Source of the DNA: Zygnema circumcarinatum SAG 698-1b
Taxonomy: Eukaryota > Plantae > Zygnematophyceae
Assembly: GCA_037447605.1 (NCBI GenBank)
Contig: CM074808.1
Coordinates: 2,480,001-2,544,000 of the forward strand
Reading direction: 5' to 3'
DNA: 64,000 nt
The notes under the pieces are model-generated. The model was given only the letters and a program-made list of their open reading frames with translations, did not search any database and was not told the origin of the DNA. The position numbers and the translations under genes were made by a program. Position 1 is the first letter of the stretch, and every line of letters starts with the position of its first letter. Positions 6,912 to 60,051 of this stretch are shown here, one piece after another.

Positions 6912-7674
6912 ATCATGTAACCTCGTCAGTTGGTTAACCTGTTGCCTTCCAGTTTTGAACACCGTTGCGAGGCGTAGTCAGTGATTCAAAGCCGGGCTCG
7001 ATGCACTTGTGCTGTGATTGACCAATCGATGTCTTAGAAGCAGAGTTTCACCTGTTTGTGTGTATATGAAGCCTACAGAGGATCCAGCAGCAGCGTTCTG
7101 AAAATTTGTAGCTGAAGACGCGGATTCGGGCCACAGTAGGAGCAAAAATTCAGGATTTTACAAACGGCTCATTTGCTATTTGTTTTTGTTTAGACTTAGC
7201 GATGTAATCTAAATGAGCCACGAGCCACAGAATTTGGCGGAGTTCATTGTATGCACGGGTGGGCTTACATGTTTGCTCTCTCTGAATGAAATGCTTCTTG
7301 AATTGGCAGGTTGCGCTGTGCTAACAAACAGCGCTAACATATTATTTGTTATTATTTGTACTAACAAATAAGCTCGTGTACACATCAGTGAAACACGTTG
7401 CATATGGGCGGAAATACCAGTAACATGCTCATTATTGCCTTATTCATGTGTAGAGCCGTAACAAAAGGTCCACACCTTTTGAAGACCATACAGATAGCTA
7501 ACATGAACAATCCGTAAGAAGCAAATGAATCTTACAATCGAACAGTGGACTAAAACTTCAAGCTCCACGACGGTATGGTTACAAGAGCCTTTGTTCCAGA
7601 AACTACCTCTGAATGCTAGGCACAAGCTTATGAGTTGAAGAGGATGAAAGGAGCTGCACATGCGCATAGAGCCT

Positions 7675-15909: not shown

Positions 15910-15993
15910 CTCACGATGGCGAGGCCATCAAATGTACATGGACAAAAGCATGATGTAGAACCACGAGGGACTGGTCGCAAAGGACCTAAGCAC
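15910..15993 (+). repeat. Dispersed ~85-bp repeat, copy 1
   Basis: ctcacgatggcgaggccatcaaatgtacatggacaaaa...ggaccta; related copies at 27375, 47222 and 49225. Confidence 0.8.
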
Positions 15994-37700: not shown

Positions 37701-40700
37701 GATTCTCTTCACTGGCAACCGTGCCTCAGTTGGCCCAGACTGCTCCTTCACTGACGTACGAGGAGCTGCATCCTGCGAATGGACACCTGACCCCTTCAAT
37801 GGCTGCCTACCTGCACTAAGATTTATCTTCAGTGGAGGGTAAGCTAGGTTCTGTGTGGGGCGTAGAGAAGGAAGTGAGTCTCCGGTCACCAAGGACACTT
37901 CATTGGCTGCTTTGAGGGTTGATGCCTTTCCGGCTGTAGTGTCTGCTTGCTCTCCGGCAGAAGCAGACGAGCCCGCCCTTGCTCCTCGACTAACGGTTTG
38001 TATATCCTTAACGTCAACACTGTTTGCAGCAACAGGGGGAGCCTTCAGTCCACTGCTGCCTTGGGCTTTTGCTTCCGTCCGCGTATCTGCTGAAGAGAAA
38101 TTGCTATACCCAAGTGGTCCCTCCTTTCGAGTACCCTGTCTCAAGCTTGAAGGGTCCTGGACATCGTTGACCATTCCTTGCTCTCTGTCTACCTCTCCAT
38201 TTGCCAGATGGAGCTTCCTCACACCAGGAAAATCAAAGCCATCGCTTGAATCATATGAATCGGAATCAGAGCATGATCCGTCTCCATTACTAAGGCGAGA
38301 AGACTGCTTCCCTTCAGCAAAACTCGCGTCTTTGGTACCATGTGACACAATTTGAAGATCGACGTCTAGTGAAAAAGTGGAGCCCTTTCCCACTTCTGAC
38401 TGGCAACGGATGTCTCCTCCCATAAGGGAAGCGAGCTGTTGGCAGATCGACAGGCCTGCATACATAGAATTTATGTTAGTTAAGATATATGTTAATGGAC
38501 AGGACATGCAACTGGCAAGACTGAAGTACCGAAAAAAACGATACTGGCAGTCTAACCAACTTTCACGCATGTCATCGGCTCCCGCAGGAGTACAGGCATG
38601 AGGGTGGCCCACGCAAATAACAACAGATAAGGCGAAGCAAGCGGCCATAAAATGGGCGATTTGGGGTTTACCGTAGGGTTTCAACGGCTCACTCACCCAA
38701 ACCAGTCCCGCCATATTGGCTCGAGGAAGCCTTTTTGCCGGTCGAATATTGTTCAAACAAACGCACACGCAGGCTCTCAGGTATTCCTTCCCCAGAATCA
38801 GCCACCCGAAAATGAAAGCGTGCGAACTGTTTCCCATCCGGCAGAACTGGTTGTGGTTCTTCCATCCCAATGCTAATCTCCACCCAACCTTTCTGCGTGA
38901 ATTTCACTGCATTCCAAGCGAAGTTGGAGAGCACCTGTTGGAGTCGTGGAGCATCTCCCAAGGGCCTATAAGTCCGGCATCGTGCCTCCACAGTGCTATA
39001 GAGTTGCAAGCCTTTCTTTGACGCTGCAATGCCCACTTGGCTGATAACTGCATTCACAATTCTTTGCAGGTGCAGTTCAGCACATTCGAGAACTACCTTC
39101 CCTTCCTCTATGGAATTAATGTCCAGAACGTCTTCCACGATCTTGCGCAGCTGATGCCCACAGGTGGCAGTCGTCTCAACAAGCTCCTTCTGCTCATCTG
39201 ACAGAGTGGTGTCCTCCATGAAAGAGATATTACCCAAAATACCGTTAAGGGGGTTGCGAATCTCATGACAGAGGAAGGCCAAATGGCGCGTTTTAGCATC
39301 AGCAGCAGCTTCAGCCGCCAATCGAACCGCCATCGCCTTCTCCATGGCGCGATGCATCGTCACATCCTCCATAAAGCACATCACCTGCAAGGGATCAAGA
39401 CTCCCCATGGATGCTGCCTGTCAAGATTCATAACGAAGAGACAAGACTTCTGCAGGACAACACCATGAATCTAGCTCCTAGATATTTCAAGCTGGATGAG
39501 ATAAATCTGAACTTTCTTGAAGACTTCACCTGATCCGATTCTAATTATCGTGAGTAACTAAAACTTTGCTGCGTTGAGGTCAAGCTCGCCACACAGGTTC
39601 AATAACGGCGTTGAGAAAATCCTTACGAAGTACGGCCGAAGGATACGATTCAAGATGAATTATTAAAGTAAACCCACATGTTTTTTGGTGCCCAGTGGAA
39701 GCACAACAAGGCCATCATCACTTTGGGAAAAGCTTTCAAAGGAAGAGTGAGTAGGCAGTGAAGTATGCGTCACATATGCATCAGCAACTACAGAAGGTGA
39801 TGGGTATAGCCAGTAGTTAGTTCATGATATCTCGTGTCGAGTATAGTGGGAGGAATCAACCATCAGCTTACCTGGGATGTGCTTGAGAAATCGTCCTTAC
39901 GAAGCTGAATGTTCAGAACCGAATCGACACTTCTGCCTTCATCATTCACAAACTTGAACTGTATAAGCGGAGTCTCGTGGCCTGCGAGAGCTCGCTGGAT
40001 AGCAAACTCCAAAGAGAGGAGTGTATCTCTCTCGGGCACCATAAGCCTTTTTTCCAAACCCACTAGCTCTCCCACCAGGTTCTTTCCAATGGCCTGCTCT
40101 TTCGCAATACCGCTGGTCTGCAGCAACACAATAATAAGCAAGCCATGTCATGCCTTCCATATCCTCCGCAATATAAGGTCAAAATGTGGCAGGAATAACG
40201 TATAGCAAGCAGTCAACAGCATCATTTTTTCAAAGTCCTGCTGCACATCACTGGAAGGTCATGACAGCCTCTACACATTCGCATTTCAGTGGCGTAAAAA
40301 AGGTGACGAGTCTTTAAATTTGGACACATAGTGAGGCTAACATGCTACTCACCTTAGCCATGGCATTGTTCCATTCGACAATCTTCCCCTCCTTGTCCAC
40401 TCCCCAAATGGGCATGGTGGCCTGTCCAGACAAAAAGAAGAGACTTGACAGTCAGCAGCAAAGTTCACAAACGGATTTCAAAAACTTCCCGCAATTACCC
40501 ATTTAGCACAAGCAACGCGGCATCCTTGAACACTGTAGAATCGCATATAAAAACCTTGACACCAAAACATAGCAATGAGCTGCTCATCATCCAAACGGCG
40601 ATTAACATAACATCAAGACAAACAGTTTTAGAAAGTGTTTCAATTATGGATCTGAGGGTGGCATGGAAAGGCGCCATAATTTTCACCTTATCAAGCATCT

Positions 40701-43700
40701 GTTTGTAATCTCCGGCACTCTCCTCAAATCGCTTCATCATCCGCTTCTGCTCTGTAATATCTTGCCCAATGATGCTCACGCCAATAACTTCATTCGTTGA
40801 ATCCCATTGAGGAGTCATAGTGGCCATCAAAACCATGGTGCCCACATCGCCTTCCTCACCTTCAGATGCGCATTTTCCTGTCAATGCCACTTTCTCCTGA
40901 TTGGCTGCCATTTTGCTTGTGCACTTCAGCATAAGCTCCACATGGTCCTGGGCTTTGCCTTCCATAGTTTGTTCCAATTTGAGACGTGCAATTTCAAGGC
41001 TTTGCGGAACGAGTACCTCTCCCAAGCCTTTGCCAATAACAGATGCCTGCAAAGCAAATTGAATCCCTTAAAGGCTGCAATTTTGACATTAAGCGGATCT
41101 GCCTCGAGAAGCAATTACCTCAGGAACTTAGGGAAATAACATGTCGACATAAGGAGATTATGCCTGCTATAAATATCAAAAGCTCGCTAAATCCCAAGCA
41201 AAAAGCTTACTCTTCAATTATTGTACCATCAACTTTTACTCGTGGGCCAGATATGAAGTATTCAGACGTAACAAATAATAGAGTGCATAAAGGCCGACCT
41301 AGCCGACTGATTCCTAACAAAACTTTGCTTACCTTTGGCCTCCCTGTTAGCTCTGCGATGCGATTATTCCATTCGGTAATTAGCATGTCCTTGCTAATGC
41401 CCATAATTGGAGTCTTTGAAATCTCCATCATCCGTCCAAGATCACGAGCTACCATAGCCAGATCCTGCATGGCCCTTAGTCTCTCCTCATTGAGCCGAAC
41501 CTGAAGAAATGCAACATTGCAAACCCGCGATCAGGAGTGAAAACAAGTGGAGCCAAACAAAGGGTCTACACTCAGACCCGATCTCTGCCCAAAAGTGCCC
41601 AAAACAAGAAATCCGTCAGTGCAAGCTCCATTGACAACATGCACAGAGCTCACTGCATTGCATTCCTGTTTCATATCTCCTTTGGTCATTGACTCAAACG
41701 TATGAATTCGTTGTGCAACTTCCCCGCCCCCATGATATCATCAACCATCTGGGCATAGCTTCTTGCAGGTCTTGGGGTTTGAGTAACAATTCAAGACACG
41801 GTCTGAAATAGTACCAGCATCATTGTCTTCATCGGCTCACTGTTCCCATTAAGAGTCTCTTGGGCCAACCGTTGAAGGCCCTTCACTCCTGCCAACTGAA
41901 AACATCCGAGAGCGAGCATCGATTAGACAGCTTGGCAAACTCGTAGAAAGGTTTGTCGATTCACCTCGTTCTCCCTTTTGACATGTAGCAATAGGGCTGG
42001 TCTGGTATAGCTGTAGATTTTGCATTTGCTTGACGAACTGAAGTATGTTGGCCAAGTTAGATAATGCCAAATTTGATAGAGTGAGGATGCAATGTACCTC
42101 TCCCGGAGTCCAGGATACAGATCTGGCCACATGGATCAGCCGTTTCGGGTCATCCACTACAGAACTACCTCCCGCCGCAGCATCTATCCAGGCCCACTCG
42201 ACAGCAGCTTGAATGCCTGCAACAAGTACACCGTTAAAATCAGGCCCTGAAACCTTTTCGTCAAGAACATCAAAACACACAGTAGAGCTTCAGACAGTTG
42301 CAAGTGACCATGTAAATGCATTCCATAAAAATTGTCCATTGTAAACAGAATGATGTGCTGTGTTCCGGGCATACGTTTGCGGAACCAAAGGAGGACATCG
42401 GTCTGAGAGATGGAAGCCATCAGAACTCCGCAGATGCCGTCCGGCATATTATCAGCTCTGGGAAAGCCCTCCTCCGCCAAGCTCGCGGTGTGAAACACAT
42501 CTTCTGCCCACGCTTTCTCTCTCGCCCAGCTCACAAGCTCTTGTATCTGTACGGCCAATCCACACCTAATCAGGACATTAGGCAGGACTGTCCGTCCAAA
42601 AGAGAATTGGAGCTCAAGTGAAAGGAGTGTGTGCACCAACGTTGTGCAAATGTAGACATTAGCCACCCAGATCCAAGGAGCCATTATGAGGCTCAGGATT
42701 TTTTTGTATCCAGCAGATTTTGGCACTGTCCCTTCGCTGAACAACAAGAGCTGTCAAATCTGAACTCCAATCTGTCTGTTGTAAAAAGCTACTCAGCGTT
42801 CAGCCCTCTAAAGCTCATCAAAGGGTGATATGACAAATTTCTGCAAAAAATTACCTGTTTGTCAGAAAGGGAGACACCATCTCTCACAACATGGCCACCT
42901 CGGAGATGTGCCACACCATCGCAGGGAACCTGCAGACGTCAGATAAGGAATGTAAACCATGGTGTGATGCAAACCACTACTGTTAATCTAATTAAGTTCA
43001 CCCGCATTGTAAGCCTAGACCTGCCACGTGCACATATCCCTTCCAGAAGTCACAACACTTTAAGAGGATAATCTGTCATATGAACGAGTGCATGCGATTC
43101 ATCCACCAAGGACATGGAGGTGCTTCCTCTTTTTCCGGATAAAAAGACATATTCTGAGGTCTTGCACTGCACTTACGAGCTGTCGTATGGAAGGTTTCTC
43201 GCATACTAAAGAGGAAGGCACTTGATATGTGAGCCGGTCGCAGATCGCCGCCTGCAGACTTGAGATGCGACGGTTCTCTATTCTCTCCGCACCTTTCACT
43301 GATGTCATAAGGTGGGCTCTGAGGGCCTGGGAACCACAAGTACTATCATCAGTCAATAGCTGCCAAAATTGTACTTGCGGAAAAAGACGATAGACATCAA
43401 CAACATGGGAGTGGTGTATTCAACCTCCACCAAGTTTGAGTGAGACAGAGGCAGTGTATCAAAAACACAGATAAGGAACACCTCAGCTTCTCGAGCCCTT
43501 AGCTGTTTCCCAGCGCAACAAGTAGGTAGCATACATTCACTCCTATACAATGACATTCAGCCATGTAATTGCCTTGGCTTGGTCAATTCCTGAACAGAGA
43601 AGCAGGCCACATCAGCAGGTAAATGTGGTAAGACTCAACTCACCTGAACAGTGAACGTGCATGCAGCCCGTTGTGAGGATGGAATAGTCTTCGCCTCGTT

Positions 43701-46500
43701 GTAATTGTGCATGATTATTAAGCCCCAAACTTTCCGCTGTGCTCTACTCACTAAAGTTAATGGCATCAGTAGCAGAGAACGGACCCCAATGGCCAAAAGA
43801 GCTTCACGCTGCTTCGCATCAACACCTGCAAGGATCCAAGTTTACTAAACTTAGCCACCAAGTCAAAGATACCGGAGGCACACTCGCAAAGGCGAGAAAC
43901 ATTAAGATTCCCAGGCAATTTTACTTGAGGTGCTTGATAGACGGGAAAAGGGAGGACTAAGGAGGGATGTACGTTCGTGCCTTGAGATTGCCCAACAATG
44001 CCAAAAATTTGCACTTCCACAGAAAGTGTGAAGTGCTCTTAAAGAAACTTCTACACAGTAAGAAGTGAAATGGATTGAACTAAGTACTACGTCCCAGGAA
44101 AAAAAGCTGGAGACAGACCTGCTAAAGGTGAAGCTGTGAGAGCGATAGGCTGCACGACAGAAGCATCTTGAAGCAGGTCCGACTGTCCGGAGGAAGCATC
44201 GTAAATAAAGCGCATGGGAATCTGCTCTTTGCTGCCATCGTCGAGCCATTCCTGAAAGATAGCAATAACCACAATGAGCTCAACTAGGAACTAACCGTTT
44301 CTAATTCTTACAAAACTGAAGGAAATGAAGTCCTTTCACAATGCTGGAGCCCCAGACACAACAGATGTTTCGACCCATTATTTCATCCGTTTCAGGTGAT
44401 AGCTGCTTTTGGGTCAGAACATTAGCATGGTTAGCAAATGCCATGTAAACACCAAACACATCAAAGCACATCCACAAGCCAAATGAGACCTCACATTTCG
44501 CATGTGCTAGAAAGAAAGCTTGACATGGGTCTAGTAAAAACTCCAAAAAATAAATGAATGGGGTTACCTGCGGGATGTGCGGTTGGGGAAAAAATTTGCC
44601 AAATAGAGGTTCCAAATCATCGTCGACCGCTTCGGCAATAATCTGCAGAGCTCACTCAATCGGATTCAAATTTGGTCTGCGTTCCTGCGTCTATTCCTAC
44701 ATGAATTACGTCATAAATGCATAAATTGCAACTAAATGCTGGCTCTGAATTATAAAGAGACTAAGCCAGACACTACTAGCAGAAATTGGGATCACAGCAC
44801 GTAGCAAAATGTTTACTTTAGGGTTTGTGATAATCCATAAGCCCCACAATGGACGACTCACAATATTTGAATTGTAACTTGACGGCTTACCTGGGCATGG
44901 CTTTCATATGAGAGTTGGCCAATAATCACTCTATTATAACCTGTCAAGTTTCTCAGTTCCTGCGCCGGTTCCACATCCTCAAAGTTAAAGTGGAGCACTA
45001 TAACAGTGCAGAAGCTACAAATAGCCGCCTCCCAAAACAGTCCATATTATTGCCATACAGCGGCGTCTGTACCGTAAGCTCCATCTGCTACCTCAGACTC
45101 CTTAATGCATAATGATCGCAGACTCACGCACTGCTGAGCATAGAGAGAAAATTGTTCAACTGGAGCACCTGCACAGCAGCGTTGCATAGCCATGCAATGT
45201 CCCTGTTGGGTGCAGCTTGAAGTCGATCAATTGCCCTTCGAGCTAGCTGGTGAAAGTGTAGGCGAGTGACTGCCATGAAAATTGCAGCACCTCGTTTGTC
45301 AGTCTGTCACGTCCCTATTCAAACCCAGCTATCCGTCCACCTTTCGTCTCTATTCAAGCAAAGCAGACAATTGTGGAATGCTTATCCCGGTTTAAAAATC
45401 TTTCGCAATTAGTGAAAATCAGGAGAGAAACAAATGAGACAGCTTGGCGTAAGGGTCACAAAAATCCTTAAGCACCTTGCTCTAAATCGCGCTCCAAACT
45501 CACGATAATCCCAGGGCCGGTTTTACAGCCTGTCAAGCAAAGGTAGTGGCCTGCAATTGGAATTGATAGGTCCAACGTCAGAGTAGACGTAACAACGGCC
45601 ATAATAGTGCACAAACGGTCGGACATGCTGCAGCAAACCTTGCAGGCATCCAATTGTTGATCAGGCCAACAGGAACACTTCGCTAACAAGCTGCTTTCAA
45701 CTTACCCGTTTCCCTAAGTAATACACGGCAAGTGCTTGTCCCATGCTCAGATGCCCGTTGAAGTAGAGATACTATGACAGAAAACACCTGCCAAGAGCTT
45801 CAAATAACGTTCAGAGTGCTGATCAAACCATCGAATCCACTCCGCGAGAGCTTTAAGTACAACCATATATGGCAGGGTAAAGGTAAACCTTCACAGCGGC
45901 CAGGATAAGAAATTCTCAGGTGCTACATAGCGTGCAGCAAATAGTGCTAGCTGCTATTAGGAAGTACACAAGAGGCTCTCAGGTCAGCCGGTTTGACATG
46001 CTAGCATGGTTCTATCTTTGGTGGATTCCAATAAACCAGAAGAGAGCAATAAAACTTACTTCTTCAGTGAGCAGCTCCTGAAGCTTCAAGCCCAATGTCG
46101 CCCTCGGTCCTAAAGAAATTACGTGATCTTGGACCTCAATAAACTGCAAGAGATTTTCACTAATGGCCAGAACCTGCAGAACCATGCTCCTCCATTAGTC
46201 CAATGAAGCATTCATCTGAAGCCTATCCATATGAATTGATTCTACTCCAATTCAGTGAATACGTTCATTTCTTCAATTCATTTTCACCAAAGCTCCGCTG
46301 GCCAACCATTGCCAGCACCCGAATTGCAACGTGCCCAAAACAGCAACGCAGCCATAAAAATCACCAGCTCGGGCTCACCCTGGGCGAGCTCTCACCTCGT
46401 GCGTCTTCTCGTCCACTACCAGCACGGCCCCGTGGCTTTGGCACAACACACCCGGCCGAAACGCAGTAACGGAGCGCATGTCTGCCCCGCTGGCAACCAT
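34722..46500 (-). CDS. Phytochrome-like hybrid histidine kinase (PAS-GAF-PHY-PAS-PAS-HisKA-HATPase-long linker-REC) lacking bilin-binding residues
   Basis: More than 20 in-frame exons, e.g. 46500-46396, 46173-46060, 45787-45706, 45550-45476, 44959-44891, 44642-44568, 44251-44119, 43825-43644, 39384-38697, 38455-36267, 36097-36039, 35671-35573, 35247-35130, 34907-34722. Kinase motifs [32 protein letters not shown] motifs IIDDE, LLLDE, ISA, GKP. Confidence 0.92.
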
Positions 46501-46536
46501 CCTTCTGCCGTCAGCGCTCCTCCCTCCGGCCGCGCG

Positions 46537-46599
46537 TCAAGCTCCGCCCGCCTCCCCGCGCGCGCAAGGAGGGCGGGAAGAAGTGGAGGAAGGTGCCAT
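46537..46599 (-). other. 20-codon upstream ORF (MAPSSTSSRPPCARGEAGGA*) in frame with the phytochrome-like ATG
   Basis: ATG at 46599 and TGA at 46539-46537; 99 nt upstream of, and in frame with, the ATG at 46500. Confidence 0.6.
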
Positions 46600-47221
46600 G
46601 GCCTGCCAAGAGAAAGCACGTCCGCAGGGGGCAGCCGTATCTGTGTCCCGCGTTCGTACATATTCGTACACTCCTCCGGGGAGGCACAAACAAACTTGAT
46701 CGAGCGGCCCGGCCATTGAATCCCTCTGTACGGTCCGTATGGTGGCGTACTTTTCTCGTTTCTTTTTGGCGCGGCGACACGTGTCGCGCGGACGATCACA
46801 ATCCAGACTCGTTGGCGCCGTACGGCGCAGTAGAGGACGGATCGGTCAAGTAAAATCTTGGTCCTGCGACTAGATGGACTAGTCATGACTAGTCCGGCGC
46901 ATGACCATTGGCTAGTCGGACCACCATCGCAAGAGGCATGTGTGCATAGGCTCGTGTTGAACACGAGATGGCTGTTGGGTTTGAGAGAGGCGAGGATTGC
47001 ATGTAAGTCGTCGAGCCGATTTGAAACGTTTCTGCAAGCCCTGGATCTTGTCGTAGTGGACTGACTGGAAAGCGCGGCGAATCCATGGATATCCATTTGC
47101 ACGATTGTAGTTTGCAGTTTGCGCCTACAGTACTGGTTTGGGAGTGGAGGTTGCTGTTGGTCTCCTATTGCGAAATCGAGGGCAATCATCACGTGAAGCA
47201 CTCGTGAAGATGATGACGATG

Positions 47222-47316
47222 TGGCATTGATCTCACGATGGCGAGGCCGTCAAATGTACATGCACAAAAACAGCATGTGGAACCACGAGGGACTGGTCGC
47301 CATAGGACCTAGGCAC
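47222..47316 (+). repeat. Dispersed ~85-bp repeat, copy 3
   Basis: tggcattgatctcacgatggcgaggccgtcaaatgtaca...accacgagggactggtcgc...ggacctag. Confidence 0.8.
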
Positions 47317-47339
47317 AAATGAAAAAGGGTAGTGCTAAA

Positions 47340-48242
47340 TTCACACATTTTTTGTCTAGACAGAGACCTTTTTTCGCCGGGCAGATTTAAAAATAGACAA
47401 TAAAGGATTAAAAACGGAAAATGTTTTTTTCACACCCTTTTTGGAATCGATACACACCTTTTTCCTTCAGGTAGATTTTACCCCTGATTTTTTTTGACAG
47501 AAAGAATTATGTGCGGTCCTGCCCGAATCCGATCGGAGCGGAAGATCCGAGCGGATTCTCCACGAGATTGTTCGCGGGTTGGTGCCCTTCACACTTGTGG
47601 TAAATACTAGCCGTCGATTCCCTCGAAGATCACCGTTCGCTCTGCAGCCGGGCTCGGTCCCACCGAATGGCTCGTGCCACGTGTCCAACCAAAGCCGGAC
47701 GCTCGTGCGAGTGCTTGCGTCCCTCGGCCCGAGATTCTCCGCAAAATTATGAGTTGGACCGGCCAGCCAGCGGCGGCTAACCATTGTCAGATGGCAGCCA
47801 ATCACCATCTGCCACGTGGTACCTTGTACGACGTGGTAGATTTTGATTGGTTTAAGCTCTAAATACGGACCCACTTTGAGCCGGCTTTGGCGGGACACAC
47901 GTGGGCAAGTACCATTCGCTGAGACCGATCCCGGCTGCACATCGAACGGTGATTTGCGAAAAAATTGACGGCTGCGGGTCACCGCGCGTGTGAAGGACGC
48001 ACACCCGCGAACGATCTCGTGTCGAATCCACTCGGATCTTTGGCTCCTAGCGGATTCGGGCAGGCCCTAGCATATTTTTTTTTCTCAAAAAAAAAATCAG
48101 GGTAAAAATCTCCCGACGGAAAAAGGTGTGTATCGATTCCAAAAAGCTGTGAAAAAAGCATTTTCCGTTTTTTATCCTTTGTTGTCTAATTTAAAATCTG
48201 CCCGGCGAAAAAAGGTCTGTGTCTAGACAAAAAAGGTGTGAA
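47340..48242. mobile_element. Foldback / long-TIR non-autonomous element (~360-bp diverged inverted arms, ~180-bp spacer)
   Basis: 47340-~47700 is the reverse complement of ~47880-48242; e.g. ttttttgtctagaca, ttggaatcgatacacacctttttcc and gcccgaatcc are mirrored. No coding capacity and no clear TSD. Confidence 0.8.
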
Positions 48243-49224
48243 GACCTATGAAAAAAGGATTCGGTATACGGATTCCCTTAAATGTAGAAGCCTGCCGTTG
48301 CGCCGCCCGACGCGGCCGCAACCGTTTCTGGCACAGTATGGTGGTACATCACGGTGCGTAATGGCGGGCTGGCGGCCGAGGGAGGGATCGCAGGCAGGCA
48401 GGCAGTCCCGTTGCGTTCAGTTGCACACGGCAGCGGCCCAAGGGGTTATTTACGGCACGGCACCGCTCCTCGCTCCCGCCGCTGCTTGGAAGGGAGGGAG
48501 GGAGGGAGGGAGGGAGGGTCCCGACGGCCGCACGGATGAAAGCTGGGCCTTTACTGACCAGAAGCAGTCGGAGATCGGGGGATTGCACTGTGACGCGGCC
48601 TCTTTGCGAAGTAGCGGCAAACAAACTCCGCACCCAGGCATTAGGCACCAGCTCTATTCTGGAAACTTTAACGAATCGAGAGGCGAAATATCGAAGTTCA
48701 TGAAGCTGTTCCGAAGATACTATTACTCGTCCGAAAAATCGTTTGTACGTGTACCTTGAGAAAACTGAAACAACACAAGTGACTCTATTCTCTGCACACT
48801 GCCGTATCTCGGTATCTGGTATCCTGTAAATATGTAGAGCAGAAATGTATTTACGGTGTGGTCACAATGAAGCGGATGAAGCGATGAATAGATTTTCGGA
48901 AGGTTATCGGGTTTGGAAAGGGACTCTCCAGTCTTCACCGAACATACGGTATTGCTCTCCATTGAAGATTTCTGAACTTCCTTTTGGTACATGGAGAACC
49001 ACGAGGAACCAGTCATGAAGGACCCAAGTACAAACGAAAGAAGCAATGAGCTTAACTCTGCTTGGTGGTATGGAGGCACTGTCGCATGTCGCATGCTCCA
49101 CAAGTTCGCCTTGTGAGTTCTGCATTGGTGCAGTACCAGTGTTGCACTTCTTCATAGCCGCCGCTCATGCACGCCGTGCATTCAATCATACATACATTCA
49201 TTTCAAAAAGCAAAAAAAAAAGAT

Positions 49225-49286
49225 GCCGTCAAATGTATACGGACAAAAGCAACATGTGGAGCAACCGGTCAAGGCGATCTAGGAAC
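49225..49286 (+). repeat. Dispersed repeat, partial and diverged copy 4
   Basis: gccgtcaaatgtatacggacaaaagcaacatgtgga...gatctagg. Confidence 0.55.
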
Positions 49287-49914
49287 TGAAAGGAAAGCTA
49301 CGTGCCCAGGAACGCAGCAGGCAGCTGCCGCGAAGGTCGCCCATGTCATCCGGGGGGGCACGTGACGCCGCGCGGCGGGAGGGAGGGAGGGAGGGAGGGA
49401 GGGAGGGCGAGGCCGCGCGTGCATCGATCGCCAAGGGCGGCGGCCACGGCGCGCTCGCGGACGGACGGACGGACGGCAAGCGCGCGCGCTTGTTCGCATG
49501 CAGACGGGCGGCGGCTCGGCTCGGCTCGACTCGCGGCCCGCAGCCGCAACATGGGGCCGCGCGCGGGAGCCGACAGACTCGGCGGCCGAGCGGCAAAAGC
49601 ACAGAACCGTACCGTCGTGGGCGCAGAAATCACGCACAAAAGTAGTTGCTCCCCCCCATCTACCGCGGCGCTGGGTCTGGCTGGCATTACGGGAGGCCGT
49701 CTCTCAGACTTTTAAAAAAAAATCGGCAGTTGTACTGAAGAAAATTGTTGATCAACTGTGGTACTATATGAGTACTTTGCAAATATATTGGTTCAGCTTC
49801 AGAAGAGTACTCGTTTCAAAAAAACTTTACTTCTACTGAAGAAAATGAGTCCGTTCGGTTTTTGCGAGTGCCGCCATAAGAGCCACGCCCGCCCGTCGCG
49901 GAGCTGTCGTCATC

Positions 49915-50040
49915 CACCAGACGTGGCGCCATATAAACTAGCCACGTGCCTGGTCTCGGCATGTGGATGACGTCACTATGGCGCCGACAAGACCGTCGCG
50001 ACACTCATTGATGAAGCCCTCCACCAGCGCGCCACGTGTC
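49915..50040 (+). promoter_or_regulatory. Proximal phytochrome promoter with G-boxes, ABRE-like and TGACGTCA motifs
   Basis: ACGTGGC at 49921, TATAAA at 49932, CACGTG at 49943 and 50033, TGACGTCA at 49968. Confidence 0.45.
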
Positions 50041-50275
50041 CGTTGGATGTCCGCAATTCTGTCGGTGCGTCCGCGTAGTGCCTCCGTACGGACGGGCGTA
50101 CGGGATCGTTTTCAGCTCGGTCACTTGGTACGGAATGGTACCAAACCGTACGGCACGTCGCGATGGTTAGCAAGCGCGGATGTACGGACAGCACGCGGCG
50201 GCGAGCGACCAAGGGTGGAGGGGGGGAGTGGGGAAGGGGAAAGAGGCCTGGCTGGAACAGCTGAGCGGGGCAGCC

Positions 50276-53200
50276 ATGGCCGTGCGCCTCTCCAAGGCCA
50301 AGAAGAACTTCCGCGTCGTGCAGGCGGCGGCGGATGCGCACCTCGAGTTCAACTTCGAGCAGCGCGCCAGAGAGGGCGCCCCCGGGAAATGGGATTATTT
50401 GAACTCTGTGGTGGAGCAGACGCGCCTGGCACACAAGGGGGTGGGTCGTTTCGCCTTGCTCTGTGCTCTGCCTCTGAAAGGAAGAGGGTGACTGCTGCCT
50501 ATCTCCTGCATGATCAGCGTGACAATTTTCAGTCCTCTCAAGATCGCAAGCAGAGGTTCCAAGACTTAGGTTCGGACGTGGATGAGCGCACGGCTGATTG
50601 AGGATATTGGTCGGGAACCTTTCAAAACGTAGAGGCTGCACAGCTTGCAAGGCGATGTTTTTCCATGTCCTTCAGGTCAACGTAGCGCAAGCAAGCAATT
50701 CTTGCATTGGTGTGCGTTTTTGCAGGACCTGGCTGCTGGGAAAGGAACAGGGCAGGATGAGAATGGTGTGGACGTCCACGCGTATCTGCACCATGTGCAG
50801 CGGCCTGGATTCATCCAACCCTTTGGGACTTTAGTCCTTGTGAACGAGAAGACATTGCAGGCAAGCGCTGCCCTGTGTTTTCCAAATTTAAACAAGATAG
50901 GCTGCATTCCTTACAGAGGCTTCAGATAACGCAAACATTCCTTTTAGGGCCTCGGTTTTGGAAGACCTACTGCGAGATAACTTTCTCAAGTAGCACACTA
51001 TACCTGTTGAAAAAGGGGACGAGCAACTTTAAAACTGCTCATGCGATAGTTCTGAACAGTTTCTTGCAGCTTCATTTCATTAAGAAACTAGGATTAGCGC
51101 CTCTAAAGGCCTCATGGAAGGGCTCGGCTGTGTTTACAGGTGCGGGCAGTTGCTGAGAATGCCTGGGACTACTTGGATAAGGAGGCTGATGAAGAGACAG
51201 CACATGAAATTTTAGGCAGAGATATCCGTCAAATGTTTACTCCGGAGGTAACATCACTTCCGAACCTCCTACTTTCGGCGGTCTTTTCGTGTGAATCCGT
51301 GAAGTAGAAGCTTCAAACGAAGTCCAGATTGCACTGAAGTTCACTTGCTGACACGTTTCTCCCTCGGCGAGACAGAGCATGGAGGACATGGAACAGAGTC
51401 TACAATGCTCAGATTTGAGTCTTGCGAACCCAGTAGCTGTTTATACCGCAAAAACAGGTAAGTGCGGGCGCAACTGAGCGCAAACTACGTCATTCAGCCT
51501 TTTGAAACTGTTTCCGAATGTTCAGTCGGTCAATTGTTGCGGACAAAGTGCAGTGTCTCAGTTAAATACTTCTGGCAATCTGTGTTGTCATACAGGGCGA
51601 GCTTTGTATGCAATCCTCCATAGAATTGACGAAGGAATAGTAATCGACTTGGAACCTCAGTGGGATGACGGTGAGTGATTTGTCCACACCAACAACCCTG
51701 TTAAAACATTTATTGGCTTGTTCCGACGCATCCGCAACTTCTCATTTGTTACTTTATGGGTCTTTTATTTCAAGAGTAATCTTGACAGCGTTGTTCGGCT
51801 GCAGAGGCTCGAGGAGCTGAAACGAAAGTCTTGGATAAGCACGATCGAGCATCGGCAAGCATTGCAAAGCTGCAGGGCTGCAATGACATGACTGACCTCT
51901 GCGATACTCTCGTGCAAGTGCGCATATTCGTCATGCCCTTGCCTAGATAGTTCAGATGTTTCGGTTCTTTTGCGGACGTCAGAGAGTGCTGCCTTACAGA
52001 AGGCTCATTCCGATGGCATAGTTCGGTGAAAGTTGTATCACTACAATTGCTTCTGTACGGAGGCAAAGTAGATGATGTTAAACAGGTTGAAGTCAGCATT
52101 GGACTTACCTTGTCTTGGAGTTATTTGGGATATGTTGTTGTTTCCAGGAAGTGAAGGCATTGACTGGCTATGATCGCATTATGCTCTACAGGTTCCATGA
52201 GGATCAACATGGAGAGGTCAGTTGGCCTTCAATCGCTAAATATTCGCGATGTGGGCTTGGGTGCGCTAAAACCCAATCATCCGCATTTTTCGTCCCGTAG
52301 CTGCCTACTCCAGACCTATTTTGCGAACTCGTTGGGATGGAGCCAGTTACAGATAGAATGCTCCATCGCCTTCCGGGTGCAAGCCTCTGGAATGGAGCTA
52401 TGGCAGACTGCATTGAAGCTGTTGGGATCGCGTCTTCCGCGGAGTCTAGAGTAGTGGAATCTTAGACGGAGATGAAGCTCAAGATGCATATGTTTGGTGA
52501 AGTCGAGATTCAAACGTATTTGCAGCATCATCCGTGAATTGCACTTGGATCTCAGACTGCTAATTGAGAGGAATGATTCGGAGAGGCTGCAGCTAATCGA
52601 CTTACTAAAGCATGCTGCAGAAGCTTGATTGGTTCAATCAGTTGGTGATTGTCATATACTGCAAGAAACTGCGAACCACTTCGCTTCCTTAGGTGTTTTC
52701 GCTGTCGTTTGTCGTCCTCGTTCAGGTTATTGCAGAAGCAAAAGAAGACTCTTTAGCTCCTCTTCTCGGTCTTCACTTTCCAGCAAACGATGTCCCTCAG
52801 GTACGTTCTTCCTGTATGCAGCTTGTGAGCTATAAGTCCTGGCTGGTGGGGCAGCCGTAGAGAAGGGCTTGATCATGGCATGACTAACTGTCCAATCTCC
52901 ATATGGAATGGTGCCGCAGGCAAACAGACAGTTGTTTGTGGATGTGCGGCTGAGGATGATTGCCGACACCCACGCTGGCAATGTTAACATCATCCAGGAT
53001 CCCCTTCTTGAGAATCCTATTCCTCTTTCAAAATCGACATTGCGAGGTCAGTCTTCACTTGTGCTGGTTTCAAGTCTGCTTGTGGATGATCCTCCCTCCC
53101 TCCCTCTTTCCCTCCCTCTTTCCCTCCCTCCCTCCACCCTCCCTCCCTCCCCTCCCTCCCTCCCTCCTCCCTCCCTCCCTCCTCCCTCCCTCCCTCCCTC

Positions 53201-56200
53201 CCTCCTCCCTCCTCCCTCCCTCCTCCACCCTCCTCCCTCCCTCCCTCCCTCCCTCCTCCCTCCCTCCCTCCCTCCTCCCTCCCTCCCTCCTCCCTCCCTC
53301 CCTCCCTCCCTCCTCCCTCCCTCCCTCCCTCCCTCCCTCCCTCCCTCCCTCCTCCCTCCCTCCCACCCTCCCTCCCTCCCTCCCTCCCTCCCTCCCTCCT
53401 CCTCCCTCCTCCTCCTCCCTCCCTCCTCCCTCCCAACCTCCCTCCCTCCCTCCCTCCCTCCCTCCCTCCCTCCCTCCCTCCCTCCCTCCCTCCCTCCCTC
53501 CTTCCCTCCCTCCCCTCCCTCCCTCCCTCCCTCCCTCCTCCCTCCCTCCTCCCTCCCTCCCTCCCTCCTCCCTCCCTCCCTCCCTCCCTCCCTCCCTCCC
53601 TCCCTCCCTCCTCCTCCCTCCTCCCTCCCTCCCTCCCTCCCTCCCTCCCTCCCTCCCTCCCTCCCTCCCTCCCTCCCTCCCTCCCTCCCTCCCTCCCTCC
53701 CTCTCCCTCCCTCCCTCCCTCCCTCCCTCCCTCCCTCCTCCCTCCCTCCCTCCCTCTCCTCCCTCCTCCCTCCCTCCCTCCCTCCCTCCCTCCCTCCCTC
53801 CCTCCCTCCCTCCCTCCCTCCCTCCTTCCCTCCCTCCCTCCTCCCTCCCTCCCTCCCTCCCTCCCTCCCTCCCTCCCTCCCTCCCTCCCTCCCTCCCTCC
53901 CTCTCCCTCCCTCCCCTCCCTTCCCTCCCTCCCTCCCTCCCTCCCTCCCTCCCTCCCCTCCCTCCCTCCCTCCCTCCCTCCCTCCCTCCCCTCCCTCCCT
54001 CCCTCCCCTCCCTCCCTCCCTCCCTCCCTCCCTCCCTCCCTCCCTCCCTCCTTCCCTCCCTCCCCTCCCTCCCTCCCTCCCTCCCTCCCTCCCCTCCCTC
54101 CCCTCCCTCCCCTCCCTCCCCTCCCTCCCCTCCCTCCCTCCCTCCCTCCCTCCCCTCCCTCCCCTCCCTCCCTCCCTCCCTCCCTCCCTCCCTCCCTCCC
54201 TCCCCTCCCTCCCCTCCCTCCCCTCCCTCCCTCCCTCCCTCCCTCCCTCCCTCCCCTCCCTCCCTCCCTCCCTCCCTCCCTTTCAAAGATTTTGAGTCGC
54301 CCAAATGAGTTGCCGCGTACAGGCGTGGCGGGTTGCCACAAGGAGTACAGTAAGAACCTTGGTTGCCAGGGCACCCTGGTTATGGCCGTCGTGGTGACGG
54401 TGGACCCCCAGCGCGCCCGCCATCTGTGGGGGCTCGTGTGCTGCCACCACCACTCCGGCCCGCGGGTCATCTCCTACCCGCAGCGCTGCGCCTGCGACTT
54501 CCTCATCCAAGCCTTCGCCCTGCAGCTGGCCATGGAGATGGAGGCAGCAGAGGAGGCTCGGGAGAAGCGGGTGCTGCACATGCAAGCGGTGCTCTGCGGG
54601 ATGCTGACCCGCGATGCTCCTCTTGGGCTGATCCGCCAGAGCCCAAACATACAGGACCTGGTAGCTGCCTCGCTTCCGCCTGCTTTCTTATCGTCCCATT
54701 TCCTGCAGGTGCAGGCTGTTGAACGAAGACTTTCTGGCAAAATTAACGAAAACCGGGTGTTGTGATGCGGTAATCGCAGGTTCCCGCTGACGGGGCCGTT
54801 CTGCTGCATGCTGGAAGAGCTTGGACTTTGGGATGTGCACCGTCTGAGGAGCAGGTTAGCCGACTCCCCCCTATCTGTTGACTTTTGGCTAGCTGCCATG
54901 GAAGAGGCGGACTGTGGGGAGGTTCAGTTTGGACTGAGTGGGAGGAGATGGGCTGTGGGCCGTGGGGCTCAGATTCCTGCCTTGGCTCAATGGCTGGTGG
55001 AGACGGAAGGGGAGCTTCTTTCTCAAGGCGTGTTTGTCGTGAATAGTTTGGAAGCGGCAGGCTATCCCGGGGCCGCTGCGCTTGCTCCGGGAGTGTGCGG
55101 GCTGGCGGCAGCCATGGTTTCGAATGGCGGTGATTTGCTCATGTGGTTTCGTTCGGGTAGGTTTCGATCATTCTCGAGGGACAAATTGGGGTCCTAGTTT
55201 TGTTTGTTTTAAGGTCTTTTCATTGTGACCGTACCATTTCTCAATCTTGGGGATGGACTCGTGTGTGCAGGAATGTCCAAAATGATCAAGTGGGCTGGGC
55301 ATAGGGCCACACACACAGTGAAAGAGGGGGCCAACATGCATCCTCGCATGTCGTTTGATGCATATTTGGAGGTGGCGAAGCTGCAGAGCCTCCCTTGGGA
55401 GGATGCTGAAGTGAGAACTGTTTGCACGCGTCAAACACCCACTTCCTTTCCTGCCTTTTGACGCTCTTTTGCATGGAACTCTCGCCCCTTTCTAGTGTGT
55501 TTTGCAGAATTTTCACCACAGGAAGTGGACTTATCAGAGCTCGGTGTGGCCGGGCTTGCAGGTGGATGCCATGCAGGGCTTGAAACTCATAGTTCGCGAT
55601 TCTCTCCCGGAGAAGGGTCCGCAAGAACTTCGGCTTAAAATTCAGGTTCAAAACTGCTTCCTCCTTAATCTATGAACTATTCGGATTTTTACTGTTGCTG
55701 CACAGTCTGTCTGCCTTCTTGCTTATCCAACATTGTTGCGTCGTTGGGACAGACGCGGCTGAATGCGGAACGTCTCCGCATTCAGAATCAGGTGACGCAA
55801 GTTGCCCGCAGCCTCCAAGTAGAGCTTGAGTCTGCCCGTGTACCCATCATCGGCCTTTGGGGCTCTGGAGTGGTGTCGGAATGGAATGGAAAAGTGGCAG
55901 AGCTCACCAAGCGGTCCAAGGTATGCCATGTCCAACTTGTCAACTTGAAGCTCTCTCATTCAACCTTCAACAAATAGGCAGTCGGTCAAACTTGAAATCA
56001 TGTCCATCCCAATGTTCTACACGCTTTGACTCAGTCTGCACCATACTTGTGTCAGAACGAAGTGATGGGGCTGAGCTTCCCTATGGACCTGCTAGTAGAC
56101 GAGTCGAGAGCGGCGTTTGCGAAAGCCATGGAGGTGGTGGCGGGGGGAGAGGAGGTAGAGCCCATAGAGCTCTGCCTTAGCGCTCGGCACCGCCCAGACG

Positions 56201-59200
56201 GGCCTCTAGACAGGCGGGTGCATGTAGTGGCCAGCCTCTACGGGCACCACGATACGCACGGAAACCTCATTGGGGTCCGCATGGTCGGTCAGGACATCAC
56301 CGCTCTCAAGGTCCTCAGTGGAGAGGTGCGCTGCCTGCCTGCCCGTATGGGGGACATCTCCTTTCTTTTGCAGCTTGAGCTCGTTTGGGAAGGGAATTGC
56401 TGCAGAGACTATGTAGGAGCAGGGGGGCGGGGAAATTGACTGCAGGGGTTTTGGGATAAGCAGTACATTGTTGCCCCGGAGGAGGCACGCGCTACACTGG
56501 ACAGGTCAGACATGCTCGTCTTTGCGGTGGATGAGGGAGGCCGTGTGACAGAGTGGAATGCAGCAATGGAACTACTAAGTGGACTCCCACGCGAGCGTGT
56601 GCTCAGCAGAAGACTGTTGGGTGATATCCTCAGCAGCTCGCCCGTGCTGGTCGTGCCAGACCCGGTACTGCCCTGCTTTTCTCCTCTCCGCCTGCCTCTC
56701 TAAGAGATTGGCAGAACTTTTCTCGATGTTTGAATCAGTAGGCTTCCCTTTGATTTGTGCGAGGAATCGGTGGGAGAGCTGACAACTGCATTGCGTATAT
56801 GCCCTAGTGTGGGGAGAATGCGGGATGGAGACTGGCAACGAGAATAAGCGGAGATGGCAGAGAGTGAAAGTGTCTCTGACGGGGGGGCGGGGCTGATTGC
56901 CGGGCGGCCCGGGGGGCCCAGCAGGACTCACTGGTGCTTTTTGAGATCGCCCTCTGCCAGGCCCTTAATGGTCAGGACACGCGAAACCACGAGTTCCACT
57001 TTCACACGTGGGATGGCAAGCAGATGGACACACTCATGCATATTATGACAAGGTCTTTCCCTCGTCCTTTCTTTCTGCATCTGCCTCTCGCTTCCCCTAT
57101 GCTTGTGCGGAGTACGAGAAGGAGTTGGGAATCATAAGTACCTTGGTCTCTAAAGCAAATGGCCATGATTAGAGTTTTTCAGTTTATTAGAACCAGTCAA
57201 GTTGAAGACCCCAGTATTTTTATTGTAAGCGAGATCCTTGCGGCTTGAGTGAGATTTCGGAAACCGGTGACTCAATTCCATTAAACTGATAGGAAAAGGA
57301 GGAAGGGAAGTAAGGGTAAGAAGTTGAACGTTTGATCCATGAATAGCATTGAAGACAATGTCAACCACCTAAACTCTCCTCCCCCTCCCCCCGCCCCCTT
57401 TCCCCAAAGTTGGACACTTCACCGTTTGGTACACGCACTGGCTGATGGGCTTGCTGAACTGCTTCTTGAAACTATCTAATATCCCAATGCCTCTTCAAAC
57501 GCTCCCTTTCGCATGCAGCACCCAGTTTCTCTTCTGCAGTCAGTCTGCAGTGTTTCACACGTGTATGGCCTTACACGGACTCTATGCCAATCTCTGTCAC
57601 TTACGGGACACACCTCCCCCATCAGACCGGATCAAACAATCTGTGCAGAAACTGAAAAGTTCTTGTACGAAGTGCAGCGCTGCCATTGACTATGTTACCG
57701 GCTTGCTGCCTTGCAGAAAGGGTCCCGATGGCGAGCCCATCGGTGCCACCTGCTTCATGCAGGACATGATGGAGCGGCGAGCAGCGGAGAATGCATCGGC
57801 GGTACGGATGGTAGCGGAGGCTGCCTCACAGGCCAAGACCATGCAGCTCGCCTGCCTCTGCCATGAGGTCAGCTCTCCCTCTCCCGTACCGGCATGCTCG
57901 CAATGATGAAACGGGTTACATTGTTGCTTCGTAGTGCTGAGTGGTCTTATATGTTGGTGAATAGATGTTGGAGTCTCGGTGGGCTTCAAGTGCTGGGCTG
58001 ATTTCAGGGAAGGAAATGGTGAATCTTTGCAGATTCGGAATCCGCTGAATGGCATCTTGAGCAGCATTAGCTTCATGCAAGATACCGATATGACTCCAGA
58101 ACAGCGAGACCTTGTGGTGACAACTGCTTCGTGTGGGTACGTGCGAAGATAAGGCTAATCCCTCCAGGGTAGAAGAAACTGTAACAGGTTTACATGTTCA
58201 CATGTTCAGGCCACACATTTAAGTATGGAGGTATTGTTGAGGTGAAGAATGCATAAATCCTTGTGTTGCAGTCAGTGAGTATGTCGTGCGAGTTTTCAGC
58301 ATTATGACAGAGGCAGTGGATGATGGGAGACCTGATAAAGGGTGTGATATGCGGTGCAGGAATTATTTACGGCGAGTTGTAGATGATGTTCTGGACCTGA
58401 GCAAAATCGAAGAAGGCAAGCTGGAGATTGAGAACGAGTCATTTTCGTTAATGCAAGTCATGGATGCGGTGGTCTCGCAGGTGAGCAGCGGACCAATTTT
58501 TTGGTCTTTTTGCAGGTCTTTAAACTCATTACGGAGCCGAACATGAGCAAAACTCATAATACTATCGGTATCCAAGATGTACTTCAAACCCCATTCCCGT
58601 TGATTCTCTGACACATAGCGGATATGCAACTTAATCCAAGGCATGTTGCACTTTGTATGTTGCTAGTTGAGAACGGCTTCTTTAGCTATCGAACGAAACT
58701 GAACATTGAACAACGTGCCTTTTCGAATCTGCAGGAGGCCCCCAACGCATTTGAGAAGGGTTTGCGGCTGTACTGCACCATAGACCCTGCTTGTCTCGGT
58801 GTGGGAGTGAAGGGTGACAGACTCCGTGTTCAGCAGATTGTGGCCAATTTTGCAAGAAACGCAGTGGAGTACACCTCCTCGGGATGGGTGGAGGTCAAGC
58901 TCAAAGCTGAACCCTCCTCCCTTTTGCAGAACTTCCGCTTTGTTTTCAAAGTCTCCGACACAGGAAAGGGCATTTCGCCCTCCCAATTGGGAGCCGTGTT
59001 CTCTGTGCCAGAAAGCCCGGAGACACCACCCGAGGCGCAAACTTCAAGGTGAGCTCCTCTTGCTCTGCCCACCATGAGTGTTTCCCTATGACAACCCATG
59101 TTTTGTTTCTTCCTCAACTTCACCGTTGCCAGATTAAAAATATCTGGGAGCTGGGAAAATCAAGGCAAATTTGGTGATACACACAGCATGTCCGTACTGT

Positions 59201-60051
59201 TCCAATACATTCTTATTGAATAAGGATGTAGTTCTATCTTACATAACGATCACAACTCAGCTAACGGTAATTCCTGGGCGAGCCCCCTTTACAAGAACTG
59301 TGGTCTTCTTGTAAATTCCACATCTGACAACGGGCTGTTTTGATCTCCCTCCTGCAGAGATGCCCTTGGAGGTGCAGGACTCGGATTAGTGGTGTGCCGG
59401 AAGCTGGCCTCCCTCATGGGGGGCACCGTCCATTGCACAACCCATGAAGGCAGCGGCTCCTCCTTCTTCCTCGATCTCGAACTGCTGCGAGTGGCTGAAC
59501 CCGAGGATGTGGACGAAGACTTCGAGCACGGGCAGCAGTGGAACAACAGACTGAGAGGGGTTATCTACACCACTGTGGGAGAGTGGAGCAGCGCTGAGGA
59601 GGTAGCTTCTGCAGAGCACGTGAGCCCCACAATGTCGCCCGTTGACGTGCAGGGGGGGGCGAGGACGGAGCAGCCGCCCACTCCCTCTGGAGAGGCAGCC
59701 GCTGAGAGTGCATCAGATGGGATGTGGTTTCCCGCGAGCGGTCTCATGTCAAGTGAGGGCTACGCAGCGGGGGGGCACTTGGAGCAGGCCTTTGGAGGGA
59801 AGTTCTCAGTGCAGGTGCTGAGAGAGATTATCGACTGGCAAGAGGTCGCAGTTCTTGTAGAGGTGGAGGTGATGGACGCTCAGACTGGTGAGAGGAGTAT
59901 GTCAATACAGGAGTGGGGATCGGCGCATCGCGTGGGGTCATTAGGGGAGGAGCTCCGAGCAGCCACTCGAAATGCTGTCATCACCGCAGCAAATTCATTA
60001 TCGGCTATTGAACGTGAAGTTCTGTCGTCTACTTTTCGTTCAACGGGATGA
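50276..60051 (+). CDS. PHY: Phytochrome with intact photosensory core and His-retaining kinase (NTE-PAS-GAF-PHY-PAS-PAS-HisKA-HATPase-novel C-terminus, no REC); PHYX-like by inference
   Basis: Exons 50276-50440, 50726-50860, 51140-51247, 51376-51457, 51596-51670, 51805-51917, 52148-52216, 52726-52800, 52920-53046, 54323-54660, 54780-54854, 54973-55156, 55271-55410, 55562-55645, 55753-55920, 56056-56310, 56446-56664, ~56922-57052, 57717-57867, 58033-58136, 58360-58480, 58735-59048, 59358-60051. Motifs [60 protein letters not shown]. Confidence 0.96.
53091..54281. repeat. ~1.2 kb imperfect (CCCT)n polypyrimidine array inside PHY intron 53047-54322
   Basis: Directly visible; almost exclusively C and T. 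Confidence 0.98.

Follow-up and report, generated by a model that had tools for sequence, protein, structure and literature searches.

Organization of the locus

We analyzed a stretch of 64,000 nucleotides (nt) from the genome of the zygnematophyte alga Zygnema circumcarinatum SAG 698-1b (GenBank assembly GCA_037447605.1, contig CM074808.1, positions 2,480,001 to 2,544,000 of the forward strand). The whole stretch is called the window below, and all positions are counted from its first letter. It harbors two phytochrome genes lying head to head, one of the PHYX1 type on the minus strand (34722-46617) and one of the PHYX2 type on the plus strand (50205-60051). The window is eukaryotic in character, with numerous short exons, and its best protein matches come from zygnematophyte algae, namely Mesotaenium, Spirogloea, Closterium and Spirogyra. 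Mutual tblastn of both flanks exposed phytochrome paralogues on opposite strands, with exon-by-exon identities of 30-62%.

The spliced model of the minus-strand gene was guided by the orthologues P0270, P0001, P0002 and P0003 and that of the plus-strand gene by P0155, a transcript-derived relative. The 5' exons of both were set by splice joints found in contigs of four public RNA-like runs. The minus-strand model extends from ATG 46500 to the stop codon at 34724-34722 and comprises about 24 exons and about 1,808 amino acids (aa), the splice from linker to REC, the receiver domain, being provisional. Its domain order is PAS-GAF-PHY (degenerate), PAS-PAS, HisKA, HATPase, a long linker and REC; a single reading frame stays open across the low-complexity linker (~600 aa), from 38455 to about 36100, ahead of the first REC exon. 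The plus-strand model contains no internal stops, has AG/GT exon borders and extends from ATG 50276 to the stop codon at 60049-60051, with 23 exons and 1,307 aa in the order PAS-GAF-PHY, PAS-PAS, HisKA, HATPase and a C-terminal module of ~75 aa. All modelled introns are of the GT-AG type except for three GC-AG introns, two in the minus-strand model and one in the plus-strand gene; the latter (50861-51139) is backed by spliced RNA contigs in each of the four runs.

At the 5' ends, RNA contigs confirm the first three introns of each gene. Exon 1 of the minus-strand gene (46396-46500) begins with ATG 46500, preceded by an in-frame stop, and ends at a donor after 46396 that is joined to 46173 (46396|46173, recorded as joint 46171/46394 with the cut shifted by +2). 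Its 5' untranslated region reaches at least 46617, where a 2,495-nt contig (X9) starts. Exon 1 of the plus-strand gene (50276-50440) begins with ATG 50276 and ends at a donor after 50440 (joint 50440|50726), with RNA contigs beginning at 50205-50259. The two start codons thus point away from each other at a distance of 3,775 bp, just as a preliminary description of this DNA, made by a model from the letters and their open reading frames, had claimed, and the borders that it gave to the pair (46396-50440) proved to be the exact span between the two exon 1 donors, both confirmed by RNA joints. The mRNAs of both genes are present in all four runs. Alternative joints were seen at the second intron of the minus-strand gene (45788-46059), namely 45797|46060 (X10) and 45886|46058 (X7), which suggests minor splice variants or partly processed RNA.

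The minus-strand gene

The GAF exons of the minus-strand gene (43644-44959) encode a degenerate bilin pocket, as is apparent from alignment with PHYX1, PHYX2, canonical and prasinophyte phytochromes. The pocket tyrosine is replaced by G180 (44920-44918), the aspartate by H211 within 'PHIPQ' (44579-44577) and the arginine by A258 (44122-44120). The canonical Cys/His pair has become K263/Q264 (43814-43809), two residues are inserted after the former DIP motif, and 'WAW' stands in the place of the tongue motifs. The canonical and the N-terminal attachment sites were examined individually, and a bilin Cys is missing from the protein's PAS-GAF part. Alternative bilin cysteines were considered and found no support: Cys20 is not conserved in the clade, and the cysteines that are conserved are either Cys in ordinary phytochromes as well or lie outside the pocket.

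The output half of the same protein is complete. One exon (38697-39384) encodes HisKA and most of HATPase_c, with Pfam scores of 3.9e-18 and 1.7e-13, respectively. The acceptor His839 (39267-39265) sits in 'FLCHEIRNPLNG', and the H, N, G1 and G2 boxes are all intact. REC is distributed over four exons (36154-36039, 35671-35573, 35247-35130 and 34907-34725; altogether 34725-36154), located by alignment and by tblastn with REC domains of orthologues, at E values down to 6e-24. It has the acidic pair D1659/D1660, D1706 in 'LLLDE' (35580-35578), S1739 and K1761-P. The earlier claim of a copy with a receiver (DD, phospho-Asp in LLLDE, KP) and without a chromophore site is therefore verified residue by residue. 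HisKA, HATPase_c and REC lie on one polypeptide with their boxes and catalytic residues, as in a hybrid histidine kinase, and the acceptor His together with REC corresponds to what is found in some PHYX1 proteins.

Behind REC, the tail 'RRAEL..G.P..VK.K....ILF' (34725-34907) has been conserved throughout PHYX1, and the C-terminus of the Tetraselmis protein P0054 can be aligned with it; the tail represents an unannotated conserved C-terminal motif.

The plus-strand gene

The pocket of the plus-strand protein is canonical, with Tyr240, Asp271 (D-V-P), Arg316, Cys321-His322 and a PRxSF tongue. By alignment and codon mapping, the bilin-binding Cys321-His322 (54334-54339) falls into the GAF exon 54323-54660. 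HisKA and HATPase are encoded by exons within 57717-59048 (Pfam and motif check), and the H-box is intact, with His896 (57862-57864) as phospho-acceptor.

Pfam domains of this gene are PAS_2, GAF, PHY, PAS, HisKA and HATPase_c only, and PF00072 was found neither in its last exon nor in its C-terminal module. Six REC queries run by tblastn against 59000-62500 gave only matches with E>1. Further, the stop codon at 60049-60051 is common to this gene and P0155 (~84% identical), and a cDNA-derived Spirogyra protein terminates at the same place. A hidden receiver is thus ruled out by Pfam, by tblastn of 59000-62500, by the orthologue stops and by the fold of the C-terminal module described below, which is not that of CheY. 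The other half of the earlier claim, a copy with a chromophore site and without a receiver, is equally borne out. Canonical GAF Cys, kinase His and lack of REC are together the features of PHYX2.

The C-terminal module itself (59740-60048) has a counterpart in the minus-strand gene (37020-37298), found by alignment. Its AlphaFold2 model (mean predicted local distance difference test score, pLDDT, 82) has an alpha-beta3-alpha arrangement, and Foldseek returned only weak matches to RAD52, Mgm101 and double-stranded RNA-binding domain (dsRBD) structures (E ~1e-3, template modelling score 0.4-0.6). Since the predicted fold is alpha-beta3-alpha, its weak matches are RAD52/dsRBD-like and a CheY fold is lacking, the model indicates that the module is not a degenerate receiver. 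Precomputed Pfam annotation labels it PSRP5_C in Closterium proteins.

Two more observations concern this gene. Between kinase and C-terminal module, the motif 'GVIYTxVGEWS' (approximately 59560-59600) is kept among PHYX2 orthologues. The intron before the bilin-Cys exon (53047-54322) holds a microsatellite of the CCCTCC/GGGAGG type, ~1.2 kb long, which yields long fake 'PPSL' and 'GREG' open reading frames (ORFs) on both strands; shorter copies occur at 48477-48526, 49366-49415 and 17190-17307.

Family membership and relationship of the two genes

In a maximum-likelihood tree of 32-33 phytochromes, with branches supported by the Shimodaira-Hasegawa-like approximate likelihood-ratio test (SH-aLRT), the two genes fall into separate clades. 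The minus-strand gene belongs to a PHYX1-type clade of 7 members (SH-aLRT 100), among them P0270, P0001, Mesotaenium ME000212S03050, Spirogloea SM000123S25834 and a Closterium NIES-53 protein; the clade was labelled by its features and by UniParc-era sequences, not by the named KT0720xx records. P0270, one of the nearest PHYX1 relatives, is 68% identical to the minus-strand protein over 1,023 columns. The plus-strand gene belongs to a PHYX2-type clade of 8 members (SH-aLRT 100) that includes P0155, Spirogyra varians A0A3G5EAS4, Mesotaenium ME000176S02010 and proteins of Closterium and Spirogloea. In the best tree the PHYX2 clade adjoins canonical plant phytochromes (SH-aLRT 90), and the approximately unbiased (AU) test keeps a topology with PHYX1 and PHYX2 as one clade among the accepted trees (p 0.19). 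The Spirogloea models P0152 (s48) and P0153 (s146) each fuse PHYX2 copies, a partial or full one followed by a full one; PHYX2 thus occurs there in tandem copies, which annotation has merged.

The complementarity of the two genes in the window is a property of their families. Pocket losses and PF00072 are common to all members of the PHYX1 clade, and all members of the PHYX2 clade keep 'TLRGVAGCH' and are without PF00072. Charophyte PHYX1 was described by Li et al. 2015 (Nat Commun 6:7852; PMC4525182) as devoid of the conserved cysteines A-D and sometimes or often equipped with REC, with the kinase His retained in both PHYX1 and PHYX2, and this framework was repeated by Wang et al. 2020 (PMC7027972). 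Because the complementarity holds across all orthologues and was contained in the 2015 study, it is old, family-wide and already published.

The two genes in the window are 34.8% identical and, in the sensor half, have 13 introns at common positions and in identical phase. Spirogloea PHYX1 and the PHYX2 of the window are 33.4% identical, so that there is no sign of gene conversion between the two neighbors. A recent local inverted duplication followed by subfunctionalization is ruled out by the ~35% identity, by the separate ancient clades and by the lack of any excess over the cross-species comparison. The PHYX1 and PHYX2 lineages split long before the zygnematophyte orders diverged. Of the paralogue pair with complementary parts that had been described at this place, the divergent orientation and the complementarity stand; the genes are not local duplicates that divided their parts between them, because they sit in the different ancient clades PHYX1 and PHYX2.

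The intergenic spacer

The transcript 5' ends delimit a spacer of ~3.6 kb (46618-50204), given that ends of RNA contigs only approximate true start sites. No third protein gene was detected in it (ten ORFs, no Pfam match), and Rfam gave no credible match to a known RNA. Its observed/expected CpG ratio is 1.2, compared with 0.71 window-wide. The spacer contains two GGGAGG microsatellites and, at 47340-48242, a foldback element of ~0.9 kb resembling a miniature inverted-repeat transposable element (MITE), defined by the inverted repeats I1-I4. The arms of the element (~340 nt) are 74-91% complementary and enclose ~225 nt.

A bidirectional promoter in the usual sense has divergent starts less than ~1 kb apart within one promoter region. 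The starts at ~46617 and ~50205 lie ~3.6 kb apart with the foldback element between them, so the spacer is not a compact bidirectional promoter. Compared with a two-component operon, of which the locus had been proposed to be a eukaryotic analogue, co-transcription is lacking: the genes lie on opposite strands and give separate spliced mRNAs.

RNA-contig signal within the spacer coincides with repeats. The short dispersed repeat 47217-47300, with related copies at 49222-49265, 48990-49014 and 15952-15976, has no Rfam match; in each of the four runs it attains a contig depth of 2,300-7,400 and shows numerous differing loose ends. Many transcripts probably contain this repeat. Outside the pair, the plus-strand gene is followed by a 6-phosphogluconate dehydrogenase gene (62292-63476, plus strand, start ~62440), which is preceded by a GC-rich region (61500-62300).

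Conservation of the gene adjacency

The head-to-head adjacency of PHYX1 and PHYX2 appears to be new; we have seen it so far only in this genome, and it is not reported in the literature searched. In Mesotaenium endlicherianum the orthologues are, by their gene names, unlinked on scaffolds 212 (ME000212S03050) and 176 (ME000176S02010). The names likewise place Spirogloea muscicola PHYX1 on s123 and its PHYX2 copies on s146, s72 and s48. In Closterium, no phytochrome-like sequence occurs within 10 kb upstream of PHYX1 in NIES-53 or within 10 kb upstream of PHYX2 in Naga37s-1. No microsynteny of flanking genes with the Closterium loci was detected; since no flanking gene is shared, the missing pair sits there on a background of generally eroded synteny. 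The divergent pair is consequently absent from all three genera, and this non-conservation is what the preliminary description itself had named as evidence against its proposal. As both genes exist without linkage in three further genera, neither family depends on it for its function.

Parsimony makes it more likely that the adjacency arose within this lineage. Either the two genes were juxtaposed secondarily, or they are what remains of an old inverted duplication, with several subsequent losses; the latter is a possible origin because the AU test does not reject a joint PHYX1 and PHYX2 clade.

Possible roles of the two proteins

The residues described above lead us to propose separate roles for the two proteins. 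PHYX2 is most likely a bilin-binding, light-regulated sensor histidine kinase. Since its own REC is missing, it would have to hand the phosphate to a receiver on another protein, and this is the route that we consider most likely. PHYX1 keeps the PAS-GAF-PHY fold and most likely binds no bilin, because the bilin-contacting residues and the motifs of the PHY tongue are gone. It can be regarded as a hybrid histidine kinase, because HisKA/HATPase and the C-terminal REC are complete and very conserved, and it would most likely feed a relay of HPt proteins and response regulators. On balance, we find it probable that the two genes are neighbors without being obligatorily coupled, PHYX2 acting as a bilin-binding sensor kinase and PHYX1 as a bilin-less hybrid kinase.

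A different possibility, doubtful in our opinion and yet deserving attention, is that the genes form a coupled module, in which PHYX2 senses light, PHYX1 provides kinase and receiver output, and the divergent arrangement aids their co-regulation. Coupling might be achieved by two routes: either through a heterodimer assembled via the PAS-PAS/DHp region, or through trans-phosphotransfer, with PHYX2 His896 as donor and PHYX1 Asp1706 as acceptor. The complementarity of parts throughout both families is in its favor, and several further observations weigh against the uncoupled roles proposed above.

Firstly, selective constraint is distributed in a complementary manner. When this organism is compared with Mesotaenium, Spirogloea and Closterium, using the same species pairs for both families, the identity in PAS-GAF is 43-48% for PHYX1 and 58-71% for PHYX2, and in HisKA-HATPase it is 73-82% for PHYX1 and 57-64% for PHYX2. 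The sensor is thus the constrained part of PHYX2, and the kinase that of PHYX1. In line with this, the G2 box is degenerate in several PHYX2 orthologues, while the acceptor His is invariant. Between the two proteins of the window, the histidine kinase region is the most similar part (51% versus ~31% elsewhere), although the higher similarity may simply reflect retained catalytic function.

Secondly, the families tend to occur together. Both are present in five of the eight One Thousand Plants (1KP) transcriptomes in the list of Li et al. 2015 (PMC4525182), namely those of Zygnemopsis, Cylindrocystis cushleckae, Mesotaenium kramstae, Netrium and Coleochaete irregularis, one family alone being found in the other three. 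Mesotaenium and Spirogloea likewise possess both types, and so does Closterium when its two assemblies are combined. Such co-occurrence is, however, confounded by shared ancestry. Constraint and co-occurrence are new, indirect hints at a division of labor: they match the prediction of a model of sensor subunit and output subunit, and are compatible, too, with two independent pathways that were inherited together.

Thirdly, there are hints of common regulation. Contig depths of both transcripts rank the four runs identically, but these depths are unnormalized (n=4) and a poor measure of expression. A motif count shows that 8 of the 19 CACGTG G-boxes in the window lie in the spacer (46778, 47190, 47678, 47813, 47898, 49359, 49943 and 50033), compared with 1.1 expected from the local dinucleotide composition (P ~2e-5; the motif was chosen beforehand). 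In plants, G-boxes are bound by light-signalling factors of the bZIP and bHLH types. Some of the boxes are located ~160-570 bp from the minus-strand 5' end and ~170-260 bp from the plus-strand 5' end; three of the eight fall within the foldback element. This enrichment may reflect common light-related regulation, and we treat it as a lead, not as proof of co-regulation.

Finally, the adjacency itself seems improbable by chance. For two specific family members to become neighbors, a rough estimate that assumes ~20 eligible pairings in a set of more than 10^4 genes, and was not computed from this genome, gives a value that should be well under 1%. Moreover, the lack of linkage in Mesotaenium and Spirogloea was judged from scaffold names of draft assemblies. 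Set against these points, the adjacency is missing from three genera that have both genes, hence linkage is unneeded, and a distance of 3.6 kb, including a transposon-like insert, separates the 5' ends. The co-regulated module of the preliminary description thus holds insofar as transcripts of both genes occur together in the four RNA-like runs; a compact shared promoter and a conserved arrangement are not there.

In its strictest form, the idea of coupling would turn the pair into a split photoreceptor. The PHYX2 sensor would control the PHYX1 kinase and receiver by a heterodimer or by transfer from His896 to Asp1706, PHYX1 would be an obligate output subunit, and the locus would represent a co-regulated light-signalling cassette. 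We hold this stricter version to be unlikely. In the literature searched there is no functional study of PHYX1 or PHYX2, nor are there interaction, phosphotransfer or spectroscopy data on them.

Two other explanations fare worse. PHYX1 might be a light-blind decoy or attenuator that titrates PHYX2, or downstream HPt and response-regulator partners, and so damps the light signal. Loss of the bilin pocket with retention of dimerization and kinase modules would suit such a role, as would expression of both genes in the same samples. However, conservation of the catalytic residues is higher in the PHYX1 kinase and REC than in PHYX2, at the identity across orders quoted above, and a mere decoy is hard to square with residues so conserved; we therefore judge this role quite improbable. 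Least credible of all is an assembly artefact in which two loci were joined via the repeat-rich spacer: the foldback element, microsatellites and dispersed repeat might invite one and no contig spans the spacer, but every repeat is flanked by unique sequence, and the spacer sequence is reproducibly present, because 91-93% of the words sampled from 45400-51400 occur in each of six DNA-type runs (five samples, three studies).

Relation to known phytochrome systems

Like the charophyte PHYX1 proteins (PMC4525182), the minus-strand protein lacks the canonical bilin Cys and the pocket residues and has the kinase His and a C-terminal REC. It is not essentially different from them; the present locus adds a genomic copy with its exon structure, the ~600-aa linker and a PHYX2 neighbor. 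The plus-strand gene in turn resembles charophyte PHYX2 (PMC4525182) in the signature around the bilin Cys, in the kinase His and in the absence of REC, and again does not differ from it in essentials, apart from the microsatellite-filled intron (~1.2 kb) before the Cys exon.

The architecture PAS-GAF-PHY-PAS-PAS-HK-REC (HK, histidine kinase) with a kinase His, present in the minus-strand gene, is also known from prasinophyte, glaucophyte and cryptophyte phytochromes (e.g. Tetraselmis astigmatica AIS82727, P0054), and the REC-bearing phytochrome of Mesostigma (Wang et al. 2020, PMC7027972) belongs to the same class. These proteins, that of Mesostigma included, keep the bilin Cys and are photoactive, whereas in the minus-strand gene and all PHYX1 the pocket residues are gone. 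Canonical plant phytochromes (PHY1/2, PHYA-E), to which PHYX2 is the nearest clade, share the PAS-GAF-PHY-PAS-PAS-kinase-like layout with both genes of the window. They have, however, lost the kinase His (Q/R in 'RQEI'/'CQEI') and never carry REC, whereas both genes described here keep 'CHEIRNPLNG'.

A phytochrome kinase encoded beside a gene that supplies a receiver recalls the bacterial Cph1-Rcp1 and BphP-RR (RR, response regulator) operons, in which the kinase is likewise without REC. Unlike these, the window contains two divergent eukaryotic transcription units ~3.6 kb apart, and its receiver is part of a full-length phytochrome-like hybrid kinase instead of a single-domain regulator.

Conclusions

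Taken together, our analysis mainly rediscovers a published feature of the PHYX1 and PHYX2 families, and the linkage of the two genes is not conserved. We infer from their residues that one neighbor would bind bilin and the other would not, and that both may act as kinases without depending on their adjacency. The locus provides exon structures of both genes and evidence that both are transcribed. Among the phytochromes of the algae related to land plants, PHYX1 and PHYX2 are understood least, and PHYX1 poses a particular puzzle as an apparently pigment-less phytochrome that has been retained for hundreds of millions of years. Two leads towards a partnership emerge from the present work: the linkage across a G-box-rich spacer in one lineage, and the complementary constraint on the sensor of one protein and on the kinase and receiver of the other. 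If such a partnership were true, it would explain both the persistence of a blind phytochrome and the way in which an algal phytochrome kinase without a receiver signals.

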